A stretch of DNA of 64,000 bases, from positions 1,987,312 to 2,051,311 of the forward strand of contig OZ316897.1 of NCBI GenBank assembly GCA_973895155.1. The letters are read 5' to 3'. The DNA is from Marsupella aquatica. Taxonomy: Eukaryota > Plantae > Marchantiophyta. Below the pieces are notes generated by a model that was not told where the DNA came from, did not search any database, and saw only the letters and a program-made list of their open reading frames with translations. Position 1 is the stretch's first letter, and each line of letters starts with the position of its first letter. The translations under genes and the position numbers were made by a program. Below, piece after piece: positions 5,791 to 57,454 of the stretch.

Positions 5791-6512
5791 GAGCAATCAC
5801 ACGACAGGAACGAGCCTGAAATTCACTCAATCCCCTCCGACCGAGCTGCGCATGCTCCTCCTCGTCTTCGTCGCTCCCCAGCCCGAAATCCCATACATTC
5901 ATTCGTCACCTTCTTGTCTACCGGTTACACATCTCACCAACAAGACACCGACACGATCATCAGACCAACGAGCCAGCAGAGGAAAGCCCCGCCGAGAGGG
6001 ACGGAGCGAACCACAGGCGGAACCAACCGAGTGATGAGTACTGCGAATTCCAACAGTCCTCAGGCTCGGACGGATGACAACAGTCGCAGAGCATACAGTA
6101 CCACTCCCTCAGCGGGAAAGCAATCAATCACTCACTCGCTCAACAATCGGTACACTACAGAGTAACGAAGGCCAGGCAGAATGTGTATTCACGCCGCTCC
6201 TCTGATCCGCTCTCTGGCGACATCGTCGTCGTCTGCTTTGAATTCATGCATTCACTAATTCCCTCTGTGGGTCCACTAGCTGTCGTCGGTTTGAAGCTCC
6301 GTGCTTCGCGGGATGGGAATGGTGATGGTGGTGCCGGAGTAGTAGTAAAAGTCAACCAAAAGCTTCACACCATCCCATCCGCAACCCCCGCCGACGCCGC
6401 ACCTCCGGCGGCTTCTGAGTATATGCCTTCCCCAGTTTCTCCCTCCCCCAGTGCCCCGCTCTCCTCCCCCCCTGCTCAGAGTTAAGTCAGCTGACTCCTC
6501 AAATCCTCAATC

Positions 6513-6962
6513 CTCGCTCCATTCCAATCCAAACTGCAGCTGCCTTTGCATGAGACTATGAGGCGCAGAACTGGTCGTCATCGCCGTGATGCTGCCAGAG
6601 CTTCCTCCGATTCTCTCTCTCCCCTTCCCCTACAGTCCTACTCCTATAGCTCCTCCTTTGCGTCACACACCTCGCTCCCATCCAAACCTCAGCTGCCGCT
6701 CCAGCTTTGCGTAAGAGGCAGAACTGGTCATCATCGCCGTCCCGTTTCTGGAGCTTCCTCTGTTCCTCTCTCCCCCATCGTTTTACATTCCTACCATAGC
6801 TCCTCCTTTTCATGACACCCCTCGTTCCAATCCAAACTTCAGCTCCTGCTCAAGCTTGCATGAGAGGCAGAACTGGTCGTCATGGCCGTCCCGTTCGTGG
6901 AGCTTCCTCTGTTCCTCCCTTTCCCTTCGTCCTGCAGTCCTACCATAGCTCCTCTTTCACGA
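6513..6962. repeat. Three diverged ~150-bp GC-rich tandem units
   Basis: Core gcagaactggtc(g/a)tcat(c/g)gccgt...gagcttcctc...cctaccatagctcctc at ~6565, ~6718 and ~6868. Confidence 0.85.
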
Positions 6963-7675
6963 GGAGTTGAGGACAATGAATCGAGGCCCTCGGACAAAAT
7001 CGAAATGGAGGAAGAATCGAATTCCCAGAACTCAGATCCCACTCAATCTCATCTGTCCGATTCGTCCTTCATGATTCAGTCGACCAGATACTCAAACACC
7101 AGTCGACAACAGTTCCAGCTCAGCCTTTTCAGCAGAACACGAAGTTCGGTCTCCGCCATCTCTGCAGTCTGCACTCATCTCAAAGCTTCTCACCATATCT
7201 GCTTTCTACCTGTGCCTCTGCCCTTTTCCCTCTTCTGACCAGAAAGCCAAACCTCCAACAGATAGATGTCATTTCATTCTTTCTGACGAGCACCATAATT
7301 ATCACGTCACTCACCTATTCATCGTTTTGCAGAGCGATGAATAGAGTGATCAATTGGTTACTCATCTAATCATTCTTTTGATCAATTGGTCACTCATCCA
7401 TTCATTCTTTTGCAGAGGGATTTAGGGAGATGAATAGGATGTTTCAAACACTAAAGTCTGGCGTGAACAAGATAAGGGTCTCCCATAAGTGAAGTATTAT
7501 GGTAACTTTAGTAAAAGATACGGGTGTCCAATTTTTGCTACCATAAGGAAAGTACACGGGCTCAACATTTAACCCACAACTTTCTCGCAATTTTAGGCGC
7601 AAATCCAAGAATCCGGAAAGCCGCAAGTGGACTTTGCACTTGACATTGTGATGGCTCCTGCATTTGAGGCGGTGG

Positions 7676-7856
7676 CTGATCAAGAATGGAGCCAAAAAAA
7701 ATAGATGTTATGAGACAGGTGAAGCAGTACCTCCAGTCTTATGGGGAAGGTCAATGTTACCTTCGCGCTGATCAAGAATGGAGCAAAAAAGAATAGATGT
7801 TATGAGACAGGTAAAGCAGTACCTCCAGTCTTATGGGGCAGGTCAATGTTACCTTC
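7676..7856. repeat. Near-identical ~91-bp tandem duplication
   Basis: gctgatcaagaatggagc...gatgttatgagacaggt.aagcagtacctccagtcttatgggg.aggtcaatgttaccttc at 7676 and 7767. Confidence 0.9.
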
Positions 7857-10800
7857 CCCACTTTTAAAATTCCACAATTGGGTCACATAATCCAATTATG
7901 GAATATACAACAAATCTATAACTTTCATTAATGACCCTGTTTTGAGACCTCCTAATAAAATGACCAATGACTCTACTGCATTAAGTCACTACGGTTCATT
8001 GCATTTTATATTCTGATTAAATCTAGATCACATAATTTGGACTGGTATATTATGACAGGAAGTGACAGGAAAAAGGTTGCAGTTGGCTCTACAAGGACCA
8101 TTGAGCTTAGGTGATTAAGTGTCTACCAAACCAAAATGATGACTTGGAGTGTTTATTCTATCTAAAACTTTAGACGATGATGTCCGGTCTTTAATTGGTG
8201 TCCATTCGGGTATTGTGTTCTACTTATCCTAAAGCAAAGGAGTGGGTCCCAGACAAATGTGGCCCCAGCAAAATGTGGCCCATGAGTGTGATGAAGCGGA
8301 GTGTTATTTTTAGATGTGATGTAGTGTTTGTTTTGTTAGAATTGTTGACCTCGAGAATGGTACATTTCCAAACTTTGGACCCTTCATTCAAGGTATTTGT
8401 ATTTATGGAAGATATCTCAATAAAAAAATGGTCTTGAATCATCTTTACAACAAAAAGTGGCCCTCTATTTTGCATTGGTGGCAAAAATTAACCCGTGCCC
8501 CTACTTCTTGGAAAGCCAAGAAATGAAAAGACAAGTACAGTAGTTCCCCCACGTCTTGTAAAGCCTCCCTAACGAACTTGCTATAGCAATCATGAGCGCC
8601 TTTTTGGCAGGAAACAACAGGGCCAGTGATGATGATGGCCTGCCAGCACCATCACCACATTACACCAAACTACTCAATAGCAAGGCAATGATGCTTGCAC
8701 TAATAATAAAATATACCTTCTCATAAGCAATGACCATCCCCCCTCCACTTCCCCACCAAGAGAATTTTCAGCATTCTGGTAGCTTCCAACCTACCTTCCT
8801 CCCTTGCCCTCCTTCCCGCCCCTTTTCCTCCCACCTTTACTGTTCACACATGAACTTAGCACAAACCCAGGGCATTGGATATATACCTTCACCAAATTGC
8901 CAAATTGAGCTTCCAACAAAGTATCTGGTATCATCATCAAATTGCCAATGTTCAAGTCAAAGAATACCTAACGGATATTATTACCAAATCGAGTTGAATT
9001 ATATGAGTAGATTTTCAGGCCATGTGCTCAAAGGCCTGCACCCTTCCAGTTTTTGTCACACCCTTGATGGTTCGTTTATGGTAGGGACTACCGGGTTTGT
9101 CATTGCCCTGTGCACAATTTAACATTTTTACCTTTCAAATTTTTGTGCAGTGCCAAAAATCTAGATTTTATTTCCTAGTTTAAAGCCAATGTATAGACTG
9201 ACACCTGAGTGTTCTACATCAACATGCTTAGAATCTTCCTCAAATTTGCATCATAATGTTCTTTGAAGTTTCACAAAGACAACCTAAATTGTTGGTCAAG
9301 ACAATGAAATTTCCAACAATTATTAGTTTATTGTGTTTAACTGATTGTTCCTGTGGTGTTAGTAGTGTCAGGAAATGTGTTGAGCATGCCCCAGCTGTGC
9401 TGGCATCCAGCCTTGCAACCTTTGGCCTAGACTGGGGGATATGGGTTTTGATCATGTCACCAATGTGAGAAATCTGAGACCAGGTGCACCATTGAGCCCA
9501 GATCTTGACATCAAAGAAAGAAATTCACTGAGTAGTACCTATTAAAGTACTTTCAAAATTCAGTAAATAGTTTGCATACTTGTGGCCAGAACCCAGGTTC
9601 CTGCCAACTGGTTCATAAAAGCAACTTATAGAGCTGCTCATCCAGAACTTCATCCTTCTACAATACAGTTGCTTACAACAAAAAATCCCTTCTCAACAAA
9701 CAAAAACAAAATACCAAACCCCATGTACATGTTTATTTTACTTTTTGGTTGGCCTTTTGAGTTGCTTGGCTTGGAAGGTGAAAATAGCTAGGCTCCTTGG
9801 GTGGAGCAAGTATTGAAGCACTTGTGGGTCATTGGACTTGAAATTAGGATTGGTTGGGACCCATGATGCGGAGCTATGAAGGCCTAGACATATTTGCATG
9901 GAATGGTAATAAAACATGTGGTGCAAACTTTTGCGCTCAAACCATGCCACCTTGGTTTCTGTATTCTGGAACATTTTCTGCTTCAGAATCTGTACAAATC
10001 AGTTTTTATATGTCTTCCCAACTGTTCATGTGGAACATTTTGTGAATGTAGCACGGTGCAAGACAAATCCAGTCAAATATGCCAAAAAACATCTTGTAGA
10101 GTGATTACATATACTTATCACAAAGCTGTTACATGCATGCTAGGGCCAAGGATTTGCATGCGTAACCTGGGGCACCCACGCTCTTCACATTAAGGCAAAC
10201 AAAAATAAAAGCTTAAAATGCCTGAATTTTTCACTTAGTAACTAAGTCATGGATGTAGCCAAAACTTTGCTTGATCTGAGTTAGTGTGAGTAACACTAAT
10301 TGCGGTGAATATTGTAAAGATGATTAAAAAAATATGCAATACAGATTTTTCCTTGCATTCTAATGGTCCGCATCTAGTGTCACCACTATGGTAGGTCTGC
10401 AAGCAGGCCATGGCTGTCCTCTGAGGGAATGTCGACAATACCCCTGACTTGTGGTCTGACTTGTGGTTCAAGAAAGGCAAAGAGGAAACACCTTGGCAAG
10501 GGGCCCCTTGTGATAAATGCGTTGAACAGCTCCACTTTAAACCGCCACTAGCCATATAAAAGGGGTAAATGGCAAGCTAGGGCAGTTCATTGTCTCTAGA
10601 GGGTGCCCTATAAAGGCTCAGCTCCCGCTAGCCCAAAGCCAGAGTCCTCTAGCCCCAGCCAGAGCCTCCTCACTGTGTGTCAGTTAGGGTGTAAGTGGGT
10701 GTCTTGGTGTTTATGTGCGGTCGTGAATGAGAGGGTGCGTGAGTGCATTTTTTAGATCAAAAAGCTACTGCCATAGCCATGGCCTCTTGTGACCTGAAAA

Positions 10801-45475: not shown

Positions 45476-48400
45476 TCAAACCTTTCCCAGCAAGTGTGCA
45501 GCCCTTCTTGCAAGGTTGTGGAGGCCTGATGTGCCCTCTAGAGCAGGCAACACCTGTATACTTCGGCCCCAGGCATCATCTATTACATGGAGGAGTTTGA
45601 TGACTTTCTGCACAAGAAGAACCATCTGATACCTGCTAGAACTGCATTGATAAAAACCGAATCAGGATATCTACTAGATTCATCGGCTCGATGTTCACGA
45701 CTTCTACCTAGACTTCTAGCTGTGCTTTCTCAATGCTCACGAGTTCCCTCTCTGCTGGCACAACAACAGATATTGTGAACGAATTTTATGTGAACCTGCG
45801 AAAGGTTTTCCAATCAGACTGACATTCTGTGACCACAAAGCATCTCACAGCGGATGAGACAGGTAATGGAGAGTTTGGGTTAAAAATTTCTCTGAGGGAG
45901 AAGACTTCCACTGTTAATGGTCCTTCAGGCGAGCTCAACTTGAACAGATCAAAAAAGGAGCTTACATAATCTATGGTCAGAAAAATTTCTGCAAATCCTA
46001 GGGAATCAAGAGAGTCCTCCAACAGCGGTCCTTAGGCGCCTAGCCAATGCAATAATGGGAGGTGCACTATAGATAAAACATGTAGTAAGAGACAATTGCG
46101 TGATTTACTCACTTTACGTGATCAAAAGAGTTTTGTTCCACTGACTCCCGGCATTGTGAATGCACTGCAGCAACGGCACTTCCATCCAGCCGTATAGGGG
46201 GCTGTTTTGCCAAATACGGAAAAGATTAAAAGAAGGCAACATTAGGTGCTGGTGGTTAAGTAGTTTGATAAACAAAACCCTTGAAAGATAATAGGAGGGA
46301 CAAGATACATACACAATTAGAGCCTTGAAGATGCTCTACTTTCTTCCGTAGATTGCCCAATTTTTCCAGTGCCGTCCGCAATCTCTTCGGCGCATCATGC
46401 GCAATACAGGCCTGCTCGTGTATATCAGGCACATGAGCAAGGGAACACAAGTGATAGAAACCATAAAGACCATCGAGTCAGCAAGTACAGAGATGATCTG
46501 GTTCGGCTACTGCTTACTTTGTCACAAACAATGAGAATGATCATGAAAAGAAATTGTGGCATATTCCCCAAAAAGTATTATAGTTCTGGAATTTGTTTGC
46601 GCACATGTACCGTCAACAAGATGTACTGCTCCTTGCTATCCGGCTATATTCTCCCAATCTCTGGATAAATATTAAACTATGGCGAGTTAAACTGTCTGTA
46701 GAACAGACATACCTTGTTCACAGTTCCAGAGTCTTCAGATTCCGTCTCTCCGCCTGTGAATAAGAGTGCAGAGCAAATAGCTGCTAGTTCAGGTGCAGTT
46801 AATGGCTTGACTATGCTGGAGCTTAGTGCTTTTGCAAACCACAGCTCGTTCTCAACATGGTGAAGTTTTGAAATCTGCAAGTCAACAACAAAGAGAATAT
46901 TCAGCTCTTCCTCTAAACTGTTCAATTGAAGTCATTGTGCCTACACACGTTTGCTGGCAAAGCCAGCTTTGCACTAAAAAACATTGTCAACTGTCCGACG
47001 TATTGAAAACGATACGGCAATGACACCGAGGCCATGATTTATACTCAATGACCGTATAAACCTCGTCTGTCTATCCATTCTGCCCACATCTGCCTTCCAG
47101 ATCACGCACAGCATCAAAGAATAAAATGAGAAAGCTCACCAGAACTCCAAGAGGTTTGATAGTTGCAAATCCTGTATCTTTTGATGCCAAGTCCACAGCA
47201 TCGGCTTTCACCAGAATCTCGATTAATGCCTCTGATTTGGTCCATGTTGTGGTGGCTGAGCGGCACAGGTGAACGAGTTAAATTTCTTACGACATATTGA
47301 AGAGTCCCAAAAGGAGGGATGCTATTCATGAGGCTCAAAAACGACCACACAACTGAGGACTACGCAAAGTATGTGCTTGCAAGCGGGTCATAGAATCTTC
47401 GGCAACAAGGTCCACCATCGACGACCATTCAATCATCACAAGAGTAGTAGCAACATTTCACTCTGTAGAGACAAACTCCATTTTTTTAGAGGACTAAGAA
47501 GTTGGGGAGATACCCATTCAATGAAAAGCGTGATGAAAGCTTTTGGCAGAATACTGAATGGAATTCAAAATGTAACAAAACAAGGAGAACAATGAGAACT
47601 CACTGGTACGTTTCATCATCTCACGCTGCTGACACAGTGCAGACAATAACTCATCGCAGGATCTGATCTCTTCTCTGGAAATTGGCTCTGTGGACATTTA
47701 AAACAATGAATACATGTGAGGAAACACCTTCTTCTTTCACAGTAACTCCAACAAGCTCTTTGGCGAAAATCAGTGGTTTTGACAGACTTTCTATATAGAA
47801 ATCCATCAGTTTCAATGAGAAAATTGGAAGATTCATAGAAGTAACCCTCACCGTCATCTGTCTTGCGAACTTTGACTCCGTAATGAAGGAGAGCTTCAAC
47901 AACACGTGCACTTTCTGCAGTGCCTTCGGAAGTATATGCCAAGTAGTCTCCAGGCTGGATAAATTTTGACAAGTAACATCAAACACATCATCTTTAACTC
48001 ATGGCCATCATCATGACCATGTCCAATAACCCCGCAGCAACCTACTGAGTCATTTGAAGTCTAATAGACGAATATTCTAGAGAAAGAGGTTACACTCACA
48101 GATAATTTCCACTTCTCCTTCAATGGCAAAGGAGGAGCCCGAAGATTATGTCCTTTGGAACTTTTAAAGACAGCATCTAGTGGCTTTTGGTCGGTATATA
48201 CATGGTTCAAAGCACCAGCTGCCAAAAAAGGTGGACGAGAATTAATCCACGACCTTTCTCTCAGTTTCTTTCATTTCATACCACGTCTAAGAGTAATTCA
48301 TATTAATCAGACGTTGGGTAAGACAACAACATTGAGCACAAACCTGGCAGCAACCTGAAAATATTATCAGCACAGAGTATCACGTAAAGAAGCTTTGAAG

Positions 48401-51400
48401 GACCTGGAAGAACCTGCAATTAAATAGAATTTTCAAAACAATTACCCAAAAATACACACATACAAATAATAGAACTGAATTGAAACTTTAATCAACAGAT
48501 AAGCAAACACTGCTGCCGGGTGTTGGATACAGGTATCTGATGCAAAAAAGGTGCTTCGGCATGAGTTTGAAACTTACAGCACACAGAACCCCTGATAGAA
48601 CATCATCAGTCCCATGGGGATCGCTCATAGTGACTCGAACATCAACGTATGCAAAGATCGTGGCATCTTGTAGCTTCGTGGTGTTAAGTTTCTGTCGCTT
48701 CTGCAAAAACATATCATTGAGAAAGATATGAAATCCACTGCGTAAGTCTGGGTTAGCTAGTATGTGACTTTTTCCAGTGATTCCAGGGAGCATAGCCTTC
48801 TCCTTTCAATGGAAACAGAGAGAAGCCATCACCCAACGCAAGGACACCAACATAACTACTGTCAGGGAGACCTGTCGCGTGCCCAACAGCTGACAGTAAT
48901 ATAACCTATGATTAACGGGACAAGCGAGCACAAGAGTAGGGGCTTGCCTGAAATAGCTGTGACTCCAGATGTCCTTTGCGCTGTGTAGCATCTGAGATCT
49001 GGACTTCCAACTTCTTCAGCTCCTGATATGAAGTGAACACAAGCAGCGGAGTCAATAGTGCACTACTGGCCGGCCCCTGATTTTGAGAAAGAAATCAAAC
49101 ACACAATTTGAAAGGCTGGGGTTCAGAAGACCGGGGAAGATGTTGATTCAAGACTTTTCATACATTTCTTTCAATGTCTCCCAGATTTCAAGAACAATTT
49201 AAAGGGCAAAACTTGTCCAGAACTAAACCAGCTCGAAAATTGTTTTTGGAAGCTACTGGCCAAATTAAAATGCGAATACAGGACCGTGAGAAGTAAAAAG
49301 TGTTTTTCTTAGGTGTATCCCCGATATGTTATTATAATCTACAGGAAAGGAATCCAACTTTGTACCTGATATGCCACAACAGTGCCCATATATTTTTGAA
49401 GATAAGGAACAGCAGACACGCTAAAATACTAGGTAGAGTGCGTATAGAGTAAGGGGGCACCTCATCTGACTGCTTGTTAATGAGATATTCACCATAGTTA
49501 CGTTCGACGACTTGTCTGACCTGGAAAATGCAATACAGAGTCCTTCTGATTGTTTAGGATAGTATAAACAGTGAGAAAACAATCTCAATCAAGAAACAAG
49601 ACACATTCAATATTGACAGGTAGTTACGGAGCTATTCAAACTGAGGGAACCTAGCCAATGATTCACCCCAGGGTTACCTGGTTTAGTTCTGGATGTGCAC
49701 AGACCAAGTTCAGGATGCAGAGAGTACTAAATGGATTAAGTAGACTGAATCAGAGGAATAAACTAAGTTTAGGCTATGAAATATATCACTACCCTGAACT
49801 CCTGTGGGACACCCAAGGTTTAAGCAATAACTCAGCTCCTAAATACTGTGCAGAGGTCTGCACAAATTGAATCGTGAGCTTGATCCTGAGTGCCTACTTC
49901 TGCACCGTCATAGCACAAACAAAACGATTCTGATACCAGTAGAGCACAACTCTTGACGAAAAGTGCTGTGACTTCCTCATGGTAACTTCACAAAATGGCC
50001 GAAAGGTCAAACTGAGTTTTCTGACCACTAAGCTGAATCGACCCACATCAGAGAAGAGGTCAACGACAGGTTAACAGAGTTCAGACCTCTGGAAGTGTGT
50101 GCTTGCTCAGCAGATTCAATAGGAGACTGTACGATGGCTGGAAATGTGAATGAATAATTGAAGTACTGTCGATGTCCATCACCGCACCTTCTGTCGGCAA
50201 AGCACGATTCCCTCCAGCAAAAACCTGGAATGAAAGACATTGGTAAAACCTCTTCGAATGCAGATAAAGCTCGTCTTACTTGCTATAAATTATGGCGTTT
50301 GATAAGATGAAAAGATGACAAAGCTTGAAATTAAGTCTACTCATGTATCAAACGCATAATCTGTGATGAACCACAAAATGTGCTTCCCTACTAGACAACA
50401 GAAGGTGGGACATACCACATGTCCACAAGAATCACGTCCTCTTCTCCCAGCCTTTCCACATAGCTCTGTAAGGTCACTGCAAGAGACCAAGAGGTATTAT
50501 TGGATTGTGTGATGCTATTCAGATGTCAGTCTGAAACGAACTCTAGCAGCTAGTAACTTACGGACCGCTTGCAACCACCAAGGAGATGAGAATAACCAAA
50601 CGAATGAGCATTAACCAGACTAGGAAGCTTCTTGCCTTACTCGACTCAGAACTACTACAGGTTATAGGTACCTCTCAGTAAGGTTAAAACCACTGAGCCA
50701 TCATACCCGCTAGACATTAAGGATCTCCCTGACCCAGGCTTTCCTGTAATAGGACATAAAGCAACAGTCTTGAACGAAGTTCTCGTGCTAGACAGCATTG
50801 TATTTGTCCCAAGCACAATCTTCACCTGCATACAACAGCCACCACGTAGATATATTTGTGAAAGGCAAATATTAACGTCCACAATGGTAGAAAGTCCAGC
50901 TCAATCGTACAGGCATACATCCAAACAATCCAACTAAAAACAATAAAAGCATTCCTACCAGATTATCACGAACAAGTCCTTGCACGAATTCGGTCCACGA
51001 TGGCAATTGACCATCATGATACGAACAAATTCCTCGCGACAAACACTTTATGTCGTCCTCATTCACCTGGAACATTTTATATATACAGCAGAACTTATCA
51101 AACAGGTCAAGAGACGCGTATGCCATGGATCAGTTTTTCAAACCCAATAGGTTGAATAGCACTCTCACCTACAACAGTGCCTCAGAGCCCCATCTCGTTG
51201 CAACATCTCTCAACATCCAAAAAGTAAACAGATTTCACAAGGACAGGGCGATTAGCAAAAAGCAGATTTTAAGGGACTGTAGATGAGGATGCCTTACAAA
51301 GAGTTCAATTGTAGCATTTCCACTGAAGAAATGCTGTACACGCTCTTCAATACGTGCAACCTCTTCTGCCGAGATGTGTTCGTCCGCTATCACCTACACC

Positions 51401-54400
51401 CCCATAAGAATAAAGTGAGCATAGCAGACTCTAACCCACTTGGTCCTGAAACTTGGGCTCCCCAACCAGAAATAGAGAAGAAAGTGTGGGGAAGCTCAAC
51501 ATGCACACCTCTTTTGCAACACTCATTGCTGAAATGCAATCCTCAATGCTGGAGAAGCTGATTGCTAGTGGAAGGAACTCCTCAGTCTGGAGCGATTTCA
51601 GCAACACTCTGTCACACAACAATGTTCATTGCGATCACAAGTTGTACCAGAAGCCCAGGAAAGGATTGCGAAGGATTCTAAAAGAGCAAGATTGGGAGAG
51701 GAACCTTAAGTGTTCCTCGAAATCTGTCACAACATCACTCTCAACAGTCGAGGAATCCTGAGACTTTGAGCTTAGCAGCTTCTCATCATTGCTCCCAAGA
51801 ACATGAAGACCTGAAACATCAGCAAAGGGCAACGGATCAAAATCCTTTACATAAGGGATTTTTTGTAAGTGATGAGACCAATCAGTAACAGTAAAAGATT
51901 GTCCTCCTAGAAACGTCTTAGATTGCAAAGGTGGCGATTGATAAACTCTTCACCTGATGCATTACAGTAGTACTGGGACTTCTGGACAGGCTCGGATTCA
52001 CAGACAACCTGTGAATGAACAACGGAAAGATCACATCACGTTGGTAATCACCTCTGGAAACAACTGAAATATGGTGACCCTACCAATATTTCTCAAGGAT
52101 GCTAGCAAATATCTGGTATCCGAAGTTCAAGATCAAATAGTCTGGAGTGGGTTATTAAAGTGGAGTAGTAAAGGACCCATAAATACGATATACATTTATA
52201 GTGGAGCAATAAATACAATTGTACATTGAACTAGTCAATACTTTGCATTCATCAAGCACATTCGCACATGGTTAGAAAATGAGCTCACCAACTCACAAGG
52301 TCTATGGATGCGACTTATCCATGTTACAATGTCATTCGAGGTCTTGCTCGGAAGGGATAAAGCAACCAGCTTGACCTAAGTAGAAAGAACCATACGTAAC
52401 GATTTCAGTTAGTCTGGCAAAGCTTTAGCTAGAACCTGTACCACCAAAAACCCCGCAAAGTTCCAAACAGCCGCCGCACAGACTAGACAGGTGAAAATGA
52501 CAACTTCATTAGTGTTCAGGAAATTCAAATCCATGCAAACCGACTAACATCTTTTCCCAATCAATCTTACATTCCAAACATTGTGATCTTAACAAGACAA
52601 ACCTTGCGCTCCAGGAGCATTACAGCTTCCTCCCACAAGCTCCCATAGTGAGGTTCTCCAAGCGTGTGAAATCTATCCAGTACAGCAACGCTTAGCCCGT
52701 CACAAAAGCTATTACCCACTGATGATCCTTCTCTGGGTCTCCCCTCCCTGAGCTCCTTGACAAGAGTTTCCAGACTTAAGACATTTATCGGAAGGTGTGA
52801 TCGCAGATCCTCCAATTTCGAAGGTAGATATGCCACATTTTTTATCCCAAATAATCGCTGCAAAAGAGGGAGGTTGAGTCATACGAAAAATAGAATCCAC
52901 ACAACACACTATAATGCTTAGTCATTGTTAGCAATCAGGCACCGAAGTTCATATTTTGCTGCGACTAAACCTTGCTAACAGATATGGAAAACCAAGTATG
53001 TCACAGACAGATATCAATATTTATCAACTGCCCAAGCAAAGATAAACCCATTGTTCAGCAACCAATAAATGAGTAAGACATTGACACTTGCATCAATCCT
53101 TTCATCACCATTAACACAGACAGCATAGTCAGGAAGCTGCAGCTCATGAGTACGAGATGTCACGCAACATCCCATATCTTGTAGTTGGCACGCTAGTATT
53201 CTCATTACCTGAAGCTCTCGCCCATGATATTTTGCTAAAGATTCGGATGGAGTCACAACGAGACATCGTTCGCCCTGTTGTCATTTCAATGGCAAGGCTC
53301 AACTCAGGTGATAAATAGGGCTCATACTAGTCAAAGTTTCTCTTCACTGCAGGTTTGGACTTAGAAATCCAACGTCCATGTCAGCAACCTCGACAAGCAA
53401 GAATAACATTACTAAGACATTCAAATACACCTGGCGGAAACACAATAAAATGCTACAGTTCAAACTTTCAATTCCAACTTTCCAAGCAAACCCGTATAGT
53501 GCGTGTAATAATATTACACAGAGAACAATGCATAATCAATCATCCTTGAATGATAATTTCTGAATAACTGAATTCAGAACCCACCTAAAACAATCTTAAA
53601 ACACTCATCTAGTACCTGAACAAAGGCTTGGTAGAGGCAGCGAGCAGCTACAACAAACTTTCCTGCCCCACCTGGTGCACTTACAAGAACTGACTTCTCT
53701 TGTGCATGCTTTACAGCTTGGTTCTGCAAACACCCAGGACATTTTTATTTTATGATACCTCTACTAATGAATTAAACAACAAACCACAAACAATTCGAAG
53801 GTATGCAGAAACTTGGTACGCATGGATCGATGACACACCTGCCAATCATCAAATGTGAAAGAGAACAACTCTGAATAGACCGCGTCATCAAGATGAACCC
53901 CTCTTGAGTAAAGATTTCTGAGTATCTGAAGGGCTTGGTCAATAGAACCTCCAACCACAAGCTGTTGAATCTCTTGAAGGACTAATACTTGACCTTGTTT
54001 CCCAGAACGCCACTCATCCACCTTTCTACTAAAGTCTGCATCTGTGCTATCAAGTAAATTACTCTGGACAGAGGTATCTGAACCTGACTCGTCTTTCTCT
54101 TCCCACGTCAAAGGCATTCTCTCCACCCTTGTTGGTGGCCTGAGTAGCTGACTACTGCGGTCTCCTCCAACTTGCGGTTTTCCATTCAACAAACTCTGAG
54201 GCCTTCCACCCTTGTTCCATTCCTCCAGGAGATTCGCCAGTGATCTCGTTTGTGCGGGTCTTCTGGTGTCTTTTGGTGTAGACTCCTCTAATAAGATTTT
54301 CGAACGGTGAACAGGAGAGCCGAAAATCCTACTCATAGAAGAATTCTGCTTCGAGACATCTTGTTCTACAGACCTTCCGTTCATCATGTCCTCTGAGTCG

Positions 54401-57008
54401 TCGCGCTTCCAGGAACTATTCTTCAAAGAAATTTCCTGCCCATCATTTCGAGGCACTTCGGCCATCGTCCTCAGCATGGAATCTAGAGAGGTGTCAAGTG
54501 CAGAGACTCCTTGCTTCAAGACCGTGCCATTGTAGGACGAAGGATTTGGTTTACTCGTTCTGATGCCATTGCTCGAGAATTCTTCACTAGAATAGGTCCC
54601 GGTGATAGTTGAGTTTTCATTGGAGAGGCTTGACAAGGCCTGTTCAAAAAATCCTCTGGTCACAGGATGGCTGGTATCTTGGCAGGAAAGCACTTGTACC
54701 CTTTGGTGTAGTGCGTCGTCTACTCGCACGCTTCGAAGTCGAATAGAGCGTTCATAAGGCCTATACTGTTCCACGGATGACCAGCTCTCGCCCTTAGCAG
54801 ATTGCGTCCCAACTTGGCTGATCGTTGACGGCTTAAGATCATGACCTTCGTTACCCCCATTTCCATCAAGATGAAGCTGCTTCACCGCGTCATCTTTCAC
54901 AGAAGTCCCAGGCTCCTCCTTTTGCAAGTTGAAGTTACCGTCTTTCACGAGCCCTTTTCTGACAATATGCTTCTTACTGAATTGAGACAGACAACCTAAC
55001 ACAATTGGACAATCAAATCCAAAGTGCTTCCGGCCATGAACTCGAGTAGCAGAATTCAACTGAGAGCTGGCCGAGGCCAGTGACCAAGCTTTTGCAGGGC
55101 TATCTGCTGAGCAAGGGGCTTTGTCCACCTCCCCAACCTAAGGTGACAGTACAGTGCGCAATTTGACAGGTACTAGTTAGAAATATTCCACTTAGAAACT
55201 AATGATCAATGTTCCAAAATCTCTTAAGGACTTAAATAAGCCAAACCCCAAGAAAACTTCAATGTATGTCACATATTTTAAAGAATGGTATCACAACCTT
55301 CCAGAATATAAAGGCTCGTCAAAGTCTGTCCCTATCTAACAGACAGTGTACTTACCACAAATATTGGACCGTCCGGTCCACTTTCAATGGTTTGCTTGAA
55401 TTGTACGCCCTTATACGTCTTGGTAGCTTTGTAACCAACTGGATATGGATGTTGAAGTCCGCACCGACTGTCAATTTCGCAAGATTCAGGCATAATGTCA
55501 GAAACAGAGCAGCATGAAATCTTCGAGGAAGTTTGGCACCAATATTTCACAGCTCGAGAATAGTCCATTTCAAGGGCTTAGGACATGAGTTCGACATCAT
55601 CCATCTCTCCCATAGCATTCACTGTTCGAGTTCGCTCAATAAATTACATCGAGTAGGCTGTAACTCTGGCAGACCCTTCCAAGGCTTCCAATTAATTATG
55701 AATGAAGGCAAATAGATTGAACAAATTTTTTAACGAGAACAGGAGAACTCACATCTGACTCCAATATTTCTCTTCATTGGGACCATCATAAAGCGTTCCC
55801 AAACTTTCAAGTACAAGTCCAGTGCTGACTTTCAGAGGCAATCGATCCACCAGGCCCTCGGTATCAGTCCAAGGCACGGGGCACACTTCGTTGGCTTCAG
55901 TCCCTGCAGTGAATTGAAGACGATATAGATGTCACATAGAAGTAAAGCCGTTCAGCGGCGAAAATCTGGAGCTGATTAAGTGAATTGGAGGTAGAGATCA
56001 AGCGATGCATCATATATGCCTCACAAGAAACTCGGCATAGAATTTGAAGTAGTTGGAAAGAAGAGAAGAGGCCGTTGACATCCAATTAAACACCTGTTAC
56101 TCTTCGGGACCCCGATTTAGCATCAGCTGCAGCAATTGAAGGCGTGATGGTGGAGGCGAATCTGGACCGAATCTGCACTCTTTTTTTCTCTCTGAGTAGC
56201 AGTGTGTCCCCATTCCGTCCTGCTGCTGCAATACACCTACTTCTCAACTCCAGTCTATTGATCATCCCTGGCCTCAATCGTACTTTCGCCTCTGTCTTCC
56301 ACTTCTCTCGTTTCCTCCAAACCCCCGGGTCCCAATCTCCATAAAATCCCTTGCCACTCAGAATCTCCTGCTCACAAATTGCCTGAATACCTGCTGCACC
56401 GTACATGTCTATGTGCCCTGCTCTCACTTACTACGAAATCTATATGGTCACAAAAATTTCCACATAATTTTGCTGCACAATGCCTCAAGCAGCATACTAT
56501 TTGACCCGGACACCAAATTCATTCCTTAAACCCTCCGATCCTCCGCCGCGCTTGAAAGCCGTTCCAGAGTTGCTGATGCCATAAGATTGCAATGCCATGT
56601 GACGCCATTCCCCTCAGCCATGAATTGACCTTTAGCCTTGGAAAGATTCTGAGTGTGAAAATCCAGGTTTTCAAGAGGACGTGAGAGACTCTTGGAGACC
56701 TCCAATAAATTACTCGCCCTGTAAAACAAAAACCAACTCAAACCAGGCAAATGCTTTTGCTAAAGGCATAGAGAGCTTCGCATGGCAAATTTGAGTTGAC
56801 ATAATCGCTGCAGTTTCAGCCTGCAGCCAAACTAGTACGACTTGTGAAATAGAATTCCATGAAGAAAGAGCAATTGCAGCCCATGGATCGATCGTCAGTT
56901 CCAATGCGGAACTTCGGAGTCAATTGCGTCAGGCTTCTCCAATCAAAAACCTCACCATGTACAAAATGAATCTGAGGATCACCTCCTGATTATTGCAGTG
57001 CAGTCCAT
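45476..57008 (-). CDS. FYRN/FYRC-domain-fused ISE2/HelY/Ski2-like DExH helicase homologue with degenerate catalytic motifs (~1509 aa)
   Basis: Thirty frame-consistent exons: 56983-57008, 56630-56718, 56094-56390 (these three tentative), 55753-55903, 55356-55467, 53839-55137, 53616-53723, 53209-53274, 52603-52857, 52289-52375, 51954-52008, 51705-51810, 51509-51608, 51298-51393, 50959-51066, 50707-50825, 50416-50476, 50087-50224, 49461-49520, 48948-49022, 48578-48700, 48344-48413, 48100-48218, 47852-47954, 47604-47687, 47140-47255, 46713-46874, 46313-46411, 46113-46201, 45476-45632. Ski2-family landmarks appear in order: FTFDDWQ, SVLVSAPGGAGKF, GSLWEEAVM, TWISRIH, RGICSYHDGQLP, GKAGRRGRD, SHFQPSYSLLLNLL, and the DSHCT-like ENELWFAKAL...LTAPELAAICSALL. 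Confidence 0.85.
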
Positions 57009-57454
57009 GTTCCTCCTTCAGCTCCTCTCCTCACCGCCATCGCCATAATTGCGAAGATCGTCGCGTGCACAGCATGACAACAATTTCGAAGTGCAAGTGA
57101 AGCTGTTTTTTTTTTTGAGCTGTTCACGATTTCGTTCTCAGAATTCAAACACTCTCCGAAGAAACCCGAAGGTTTTCTCACCCTTCACTAGAAATCTGGA
57201 TAACGCTAAGGACAGTGTTCCATCAGCTAAGGGCAGGGTTCCATCAGCCCTCAACCCTCGAAAGAGATCAGCCCTTAATCTCTAAAAACCTTGGGCCAGA
57301 TCTGAGCCATTTGCCATTGGATTGTTTGCCCTCAATCCGATCTTCGCAATTATGGCGATGGCGATGAGGATCAATGATTTCAAATGAGGATCTTCGCGAC
57401 GATCGAGTTTCAAATGGGGAACAGAGTGTCCAACTCGAACACAACGCCAATATT

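Follow-up and report, generated by a model that had tools for sequence, protein, structure and literature searches.

A stretch of 64,000 nucleotides of the liverwort Marsupella aquatica (NCBI GenBank assembly GCA_973895155.1, contig OZ316897.1, positions 1,987,312 to 2,051,311 of the forward strand; hereafter the window, with positions counted from its first letter) carries on its minus strand what is taken here, with somewhat better than even confidence and as part of the explanation developed below, to be one intact, spliced nuclear gene. It runs from about 57041 to 45476 and encodes a protein of about 1,480 residues in which a putative FYR module (FYRN followed by FYRC) precedes a body of the Ski2-like RNA helicase type. 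Exact borders were read for exons 1 to 7 only, and the downstream exons are given as a range, as follows.

56987..57041, minus strand: probable piece of a 5′ untranslated exon, from the X1 contig described below; its joint with exon 1 (56720|56987) departs from a clean GT..AG and has 6 extra letters, so the boundary is uncertain
56094..56720, minus strand: exon 1, whose long 5′ leader contains short upstream open reading frames (uORFs) and is followed by coding sequence from the ATG at 56406-56404 for a basic N-terminal extension of ~104 residues; X1 contig, donor GT at 56093-56092, same start as in the model of the orthologue P0001
55753..55903, minus strand: exon 2, FYRN first half (LPLKV...LESLGTLYDGP...KYW); AG/GT borders, X1 contig, orthologue tiling
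55356..55467, minus strand: exon 3, FYRN second half (HPYPVGY...DGPIFV); AG/GT borders, X1 contig, orthologue tiling, Pfam FYRN at 16.7 bits
54970..55137 (3′ limit approximate), minus strand: FYRC part of exon 4 (SADSPAKAW...HGRKHFGFDCPIVLGCL); orthologue FYRC tiling, 2WZO fold match
53839..55137, minus strand: exon 4, 1299 nt, a single open frame leading from the FYRC-like start through a low-complexity linker of ~350 residues to the Q motif FTFDDWQ; X1 contig, 75% identity to residues 194-622 of P0001
53616..53723, minus strand: exon 5, motif I, a degenerate Walker A (APGGAGKF, with Phe replacing Ser/Thr after GK); sequence, X1 contig, alignment
53209..53274, minus strand: exon 6, motif Ia region, with VTPSESLAKYH where TTPLKALSNQK is expected; sequence, alignment, the loose end of the X1 contig reading into this exon
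52603..52857, minus strand: exon 7, motifs Ib and II, with DRFH (codons 52666-52677) replacing DEVH/DECH; sequence, alignment
45476..52375, minus strand: ~21 further exons with degenerate motifs III-V, a partly kept motif VI (GKAGRRGRD, near 50344-50496), the arch, the helical bundle/DSHCT and the stop codon at 45476-45478; open segments match P0001

Exons 2, 3 and 4 all have AG directly before and GT directly after them, and their translated join gives one frame without a stop. Public contigs were aligned with 53400-57100, and in a sequencing run of a related organism (X1) one contig of 4,274 nt matches this region in pieces that are 90-95% identical to the window; its junctions, at 53723|53839, 55137|55356, 55467|55753 and 55903|56094, are all GT..AG on the minus strand, it omits exactly 53724-53838, 55138-55355, 55468-55752 and 55904-56093, and its loose end at 53615 continues into the next helicase exon. 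The library type of X1 is RNA by guess only, and skips bounded by GT..AG are a pattern of the kind left by complementary DNA (cDNA). This contig splices from the FYR exons through the linker into the helicase exons, so that all these parts share a single transcript-like molecule, and it also revealed the upstream exon 56094-56720, whose first in-frame ATG is at 56406-56404. The remaining helicase exons, down to the stop codon, were matched in order by eye to P0001, a protein of the leafy liverwort Calypogeia fissa. Because every stretch of P0001 is recovered, in order, within open minus-strand segments of the window, with no stop breaking any matched exon, the gene looks intact, with about 28 exons.

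The preliminary description, made from the letters of the window, had proposed that exons 2 to 4 splice in frame and that FYR and helicase parts belong to a single gene. The exon chain is confirmed by its borders, by the open joined frame and by the identical junctions of the X1 contig; the fusion is borne out by the same contig, together with the whole protein present as one uninterrupted open reading frame (ORF) on each of two independent cDNA contigs of orthologues, L002 and L003. Exon 56094-56720, the catalytic degeneracy and the conservation of the family are additions to that description.

In the leader of exon 1 (56428-56720, minus strand), several short uORFs precede the main ATG at 56406, among them one of 31 codons starting near 56620, and these could serve translational control or reflect an unrecognised alternative start. 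At residues ~150-160 of P0001, KYWSRDHRCG is found where the window and the X1 contig have KYWSQIRCG, a difference of two residues at the exon 2/3 junction (55753|55467) that may derive from the choice of splice site in the annotation and not from a real difference between the proteins.

The gene has relatives in other seedless plants. Exon 4 (433 residues) finds P0001, deposited as a 1484-residue "unnamed protein product", and searching with the helicase part of P0001 retrieved further orthologues from Pteridium aquilinum (P0005), Ceratopteris richardii (P0007, KAH7298438.1), Adiantum nelumboides (P0126), Adiantum capillus-veneris (P0127), the lycophyte Diphasiastrum complanatum (P0128, 1244 residues) and the cDNA contigs L002 (P0004) and L003 (P0006). 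A 12.7-kb plant metagenome scaffold, L004 (ENA ERZ12293049), shows the same layout: FYRN on two exons, FYRC on one, then a linker leading to the Q motif, and an exon with motif II. On this scaffold (5916-10296) the linker is split by one extra intron, motif II reads DKFQ, and the gene callers gave ORF fragments only (P0003 and others). Other deposited models are also incomplete at their 5′ ends: that of Diphasiastrum begins at the FYRC exon, and the Pfam scan finds no FYR there, the FYRN exons and the N-terminus having probably been missed in annotation; the ORF calls P0004 and P0006 begin too late, the frame being open upstream to an ATG (L002:2-274, L003:230-381), which adds a presequence rich in Ser, Pro and Leu.

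As judged from these sequences, liverworts, ferns and a lycophyte have all retained the FYR-helicase architecture. Word-based searches, which are non-exhaustive (one of them missed P0001 itself), brought up no member from seed plants, mosses or algae, and an Atlas search with the whole Ceratopteris protein returned ordinary Ski2/HelY clusters only, with no FYR-plus-helicase cluster of at least 50 proteins. The members in NCBI and UniProt carry only "hypothetical" or unnamed protein labels, and a full-text search of the literature found no paper on a FYR-plus-Ski2/ISE2 (DSHCT) architecture. The earlier suggestion that this architecture is undescribed holds for the literature, though the architecture also occurs in other genomes and is already deposited in the databases (e.g., KAH7298438.1); the search then proposed, for orthologues bearing both modules, yielded the Calypogeia and fern proteins. 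These proteins represent a lineage of Ski2-like helicases distinguished by a new accessory domain and an apparent loss of catalysis, and not something categorically new.

The window's exons are short, and an exon-by-exon Pfam scan, which gave FYRN at 16.7 bits (E 0.0056; cut-off 24) on exon 3 alone and DEAD at 16 bits, cannot settle the domains; domain tests were carried out on full-length orthologues and cDNA contigs. In the Calypogeia protein, FYRN and FYRC score 13.4 bits each, both below the Pfam cut-offs, and are adjacent and in the correct order. FYRC (PF05965) exceeds the Pfam gathering score (21 bits) in three fern orthologues, namely those of Pteridium (27.8), contig L003 (27.7) and Ceratopteris (25.3), and FYRN (PF05964) exceeds its cut-off (24 bits) in no member scanned, the best orthologue score being 16.4 bits. 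The three exons of the window tile the module of the orthologues end to end, without a gap and with 38-61% identity. The AlphaFold2 model of the module of P0004 has a predicted local distance difference test score (pLDDT) of 87.9 and a predicted template modelling (TM) score of 0.82, and its sole significant Foldseek match in the PDB is 2WZO, "the structure of the FYR domain" (E 1.7e-4, probability 1.00, TM 0.72). An exhaustive comparison with 48,161 chains by VIA-align gave 2WZO a Z of 15.0 (root-mean-square deviation 2.8 Å, 115 of 125 residues aligned, 21% identity), with the next chain at Z 4.7, and in this model FYRN followed by FYRC forms one alpha+beta module with the 2WZO fold. Two weaker signals agree with this: a profile of the FYR region against PDB sequences had the FYR region of KMT2D as its top match (E 0.18, weak and suggestive only), and the language-model neighbours of the Calypogeia region were FYRN/FYRC clusters. 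A word-based search with the Calypogeia region returned the query alone.

The identity of the N-terminal module as a FYR domain, as first proposed from its FYRN-like and FYRC-like patterns, is supported by the modelled fold and by the FYRC scores of the ferns, the suggested route through AlphaFold and Foldseek having led to 2WZO and to no other significant match. Because the profile scores are weak, the module appears to be a divergent branch of the FYR domain family. Within the region of exons 2 to 4, it also appears to be the most constrained part, since its FYRN exons differ far less than exon 4 from the related X1 contig: mismatches amount to 2/150 in exon 2, 3/114 in exon 3 and 107/1297 in exon 4, the divergence of the FYRN exons being lower by a factor of 4-6 than that of the linker.

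The sub-threshold FYRN and FYRC scores of the liverwort sequences would fit an artefact, in which two neighbouring genes or a decaying pseudogene are read together and the likeness to FYR is due to chance. This explanation is hardly credible and was rejected: it is contradicted by the spliced X1 contig, which joins all the parts, by the uninterrupted single ORFs on the two cDNA contigs, by the same layout on the unrelated scaffold L004 and by the FYR fold match, which at Z 15 stands alone; the matched exons are, moreover, all free of stops.

The body that follows the linker has the domain content of a Ski2-like helicase, a DEAD/DExH RecA region and a C-terminal DSHCT: P0001 matches DEAD with 46.6 bits and DSHCT with 30.8 bits, and every other member scanned likewise has DEAD and DSHCT. 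None of the members scanned by Pfam matches the Helicase_C profile, and the SH3 domain of the ISE2 type (SH3_ISE2, Pfam PF25446) is absent from all members scanned, with 117 bits in the ISE2-like control P0070. The structure model of the 918-residue body of P0004 (pLDDT 83.4) matches FRH, Mtr4 and Ski2 at E 1e-39 to 1e-37 over its whole length (~1,000 columns), the arch and the C-terminal bundle included, and thus contains the RecA1, RecA2, winged-helix, arch and helical-bundle parts of the Ski2-like fold. Outside the family, the closest sequence matches are cyanobacterial DEAD/DEAH (HelY-like) helicases and ISE2-like proteins. The Pteridium member is 29% identical to the ISE2-like protein P0070 and 30% identical to a cyanobacterial helicase, whereas the ISE2-like protein and the cyanobacterial helicase share 39% identity with each other; because of this difference, the family is a strongly diverged branch of the ISE2/cyanobacterial HelY lineage and not an ISE2 orthologue. 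The preliminary assignment to an ISE2/HelY-type helicase is thus correct as regards the DEAD and DSHCT domains, the Mtr4/Ski2-like fold and the nearest relatives, but does not extend to orthology with ISE2; similarly, of the profiles it had named, DEAD and DSHCT were matched in P0001, but Helicase_C was not, and FYRN and FYRC stayed below threshold in liverworts.

In the alignment of the family, the catalytic motifs read as follows.

Motif I (Walker A), canonical GK[ST]: GKS in ferns, the lycophyte and L004; GKF in the two liverworts
Motif II, canonical DE[VC]H: DRFH in the window and Calypogeia; DKFH/DKLH in ferns; DKFC in A. capillus-veneris; DKFF in Diphasiastrum; DKFQ on scaffold L004
Motif III, canonical SAT: LSLP in the window; LSGP in Calypogeia; LTLP in ferns
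Motif V, canonical TETLAAGINMPA: unrecognisable in the family
Motif VI, canonical QxxGRAGRRG: only G-x-AGRRG kept in most members; GKAGRRG in the window

None of the members has the intact catalytic motifs (I, II, III and VI) of Ski2-like helicases, and the catalytic Glu of motif II is replaced by Arg or Lys in every member seen, in all lineages, whereas the fold is preserved, as are many structural residues. These substitutions suggest that ATP hydrolysis has been lost in the helicase body. Because the catalytic Glu is gone in all lineages while fold and structural residues persist, the family, which has the Ski2-like fold, would be a non-working member of the Ski2-like helicases, an ancient pseudo-helicase under selection. 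The alternative, that the helicase is still active or binds ATP through non-canonical motifs and is a true FYR-tethered RNA helicase, could draw on the invariant Walker A Lys and the GKS of the ferns, on the invariance of the motif II Asp, the WEE box and the GRRG of motif VI, and on the whole RecA1/RecA2 fold being confidently predicted. It is made quite improbable by the Arg or Lys in place of the catalytic Glu in all members from liverwort to fern, by the loss of the DExH His as well in three lineages (DKFQ, DKFF and DKFC), by the unrecognisable motifs III (SAT) and V, by GKF in the liverworts and by the failure of the Helicase_C profile to match any member.

Taken together, the data are best explained, with moderate confidence, by a single gene whose product combines a basic extension, the FYR module, a fast-evolving disordered linker of ~350 residues and a full-length Ski2-like body of the HelY/ISE2 lineage, and which acts as a non-catalytic platform, possibly in an organelle. 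Within this explanation, the analysis demonstrates the fusion, the FYR and Ski2-like folds, the conservation across liverworts, a lycophyte and ferns, and the loss throughout the family of the motif II Glu along with the decay of motifs III and V, whereas the mode and site of action are inferred. MLL fragments are held together by FYRN and FYRC, and the FYR module of the present protein would recruit a protein partner in the way that FYR does in MLL and JMJ14. The FYRN and FYRC of JMJ14 bind NAC050/052, and FYR is a protein-binding module (PMC4659397). The helicase body, without ATP turnover, would offer a platform for docking or for the binding of RNA, much like the C-terminal cassette of Brr2, an inactive Ski2-like cassette that serves for interactions (PMC8220420).

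As to the site of action, an organelle is suggested by the ISE2/cyanobacterial ancestry of the body and by the presequence-like N-termini of the fern and L002 products, which are rich in Ser, Thr and Pro, nearly free of acidic residues and closed by an RRR motif directly ahead of the FYR module; the protein may accordingly differ in location from other FYR proteins, all of which, where characterised, are nuclear (PMC4659397 and general background). This last fact is in favour of the same protein acting in the nucleus or cytosol, where, through FYR, a transcription or chromatin factor would be linked to an RNA-surveillance adaptor of the Mtr4/Ski2 type, as are the best structural matches of the body (Mtr4, FRH and Ski2) and the Lys/Arg clusters and acidic residues of the liverwort N-terminal extension, which are atypical of a transit peptide. 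A nuclear or cytosolic role is a serious rival, although the less likely of the two: in sequence the body is closest to cyanobacterial helicases and plastid ISE2 and not to Mtr4 or Ski2, and the long presequences of the fern and L002 products, with their terminal RRR, oppose it too. A wider form of the organellar explanation, tentative and somewhat doubtful as a whole, is that of an ancestral land-plant protein that liverworts, lycophytes and ferns have retained and seed plants may have lost, its FYR module tethering a partner, inside an organelle, to a dead RNA platform of the ISE2/HelY type.

Several observations weigh against the favoured explanation as a whole. The expression evidence is a single contig, from a relative, whose library type is a guess, and no RNA runs of Marsupella aquatica itself were found among public sequencing runs. 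In Pfam, the window's own exons have no match to the FYRC profile, and their FYRN match is sub-threshold. The FYR structure model is that of an orthologue, which is 51-61% identical to the window in the FYRN exons and 38% in FYRC. The loss of ATPase activity is read from motifs; the ferns keep GKS, motif VI is partly kept, and nucleotide binding may survive in ferns. Finally, the liverwort protein begins with an N-terminus that bears several acidic residues early on, besides the Lys/Arg clusters, which might just as well be nuclear signals.

Just upstream of the gene, at 57028-57060 of the window, contigs of three genomic-looking runs (X2, X3 and X4) break or fold back, with an opposite-strand joint and shared loose ends, which suggests a short inverted repeat or a branch of the assembly graph at this position. 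Of these runs, X2 may be the one from which the window itself was assembled.

To our knowledge, FYR has so far been discussed only within chromatin enzymes and TBRG1, where it binds partner proteins, and its presence on an RNA-helicase scaffold of cyanobacterial/ISE2 ancestry, kept since the split of liverworts and ferns, would widen its presumed purpose. If FYR belongs here to an organellar scaffold, the family would provide the first case of the domain at work beyond chromatin, and the scaffold itself would be of a new type for RNA handling in organelles. The family would also be a clean natural example of a Ski2-like pseudo-helicase under selection and, having been seen in seedless land plants only, may point to a role in RNA handling that seed plants have lost or replaced. 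Naming it would directly improve the annotation of the "hypothetical protein" entries.

Among the systems known, ISE2 (Arabidopsis At1g70070, a plastid DEVH-box protein) and the cyanobacterial HelY-like helicases share with the family the DEAD plus DSHCT branch and the order RecA1, RecA2, arch and helical bundle; unlike ISE2, the family has no match to SH3_ISE2 or Helicase_C, has lost motifs II, III and V, and possesses an N-terminal FYR module and a linker of 350-600 residues, both of which ISE2 lacks. The exosome-associated Mtr4, FRH and Ski2 are the best structural matches over the full 918-residue body (TM 0.6-0.67), with the arch insertion and the DSHCT bundle in common, but they are active DExH enzymes that lack FYR and share only ~16-18% identity with the body. 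The C-terminal cassette of Brr2 is likewise a Ski2-like fold selected without catalytic activity, although it is of the Sec63 type, lies inside a tandem enzyme instead of forming a stand-alone DSHCT protein, has no FYR and is a distant match (E about 1e-18). The FYR domains of TBRG1 (2WZO), JMJ14 and ATX/MLL have the same fold, with FYRN and FYRC contiguous here as in TBRG1 and with the FYR signature positions PYPVGY, GP-F-V, SP-K-W and HFGF present in the module; the difference lies in the host of the domain, which in this family is helicase-like and not a chromatin enzyme.

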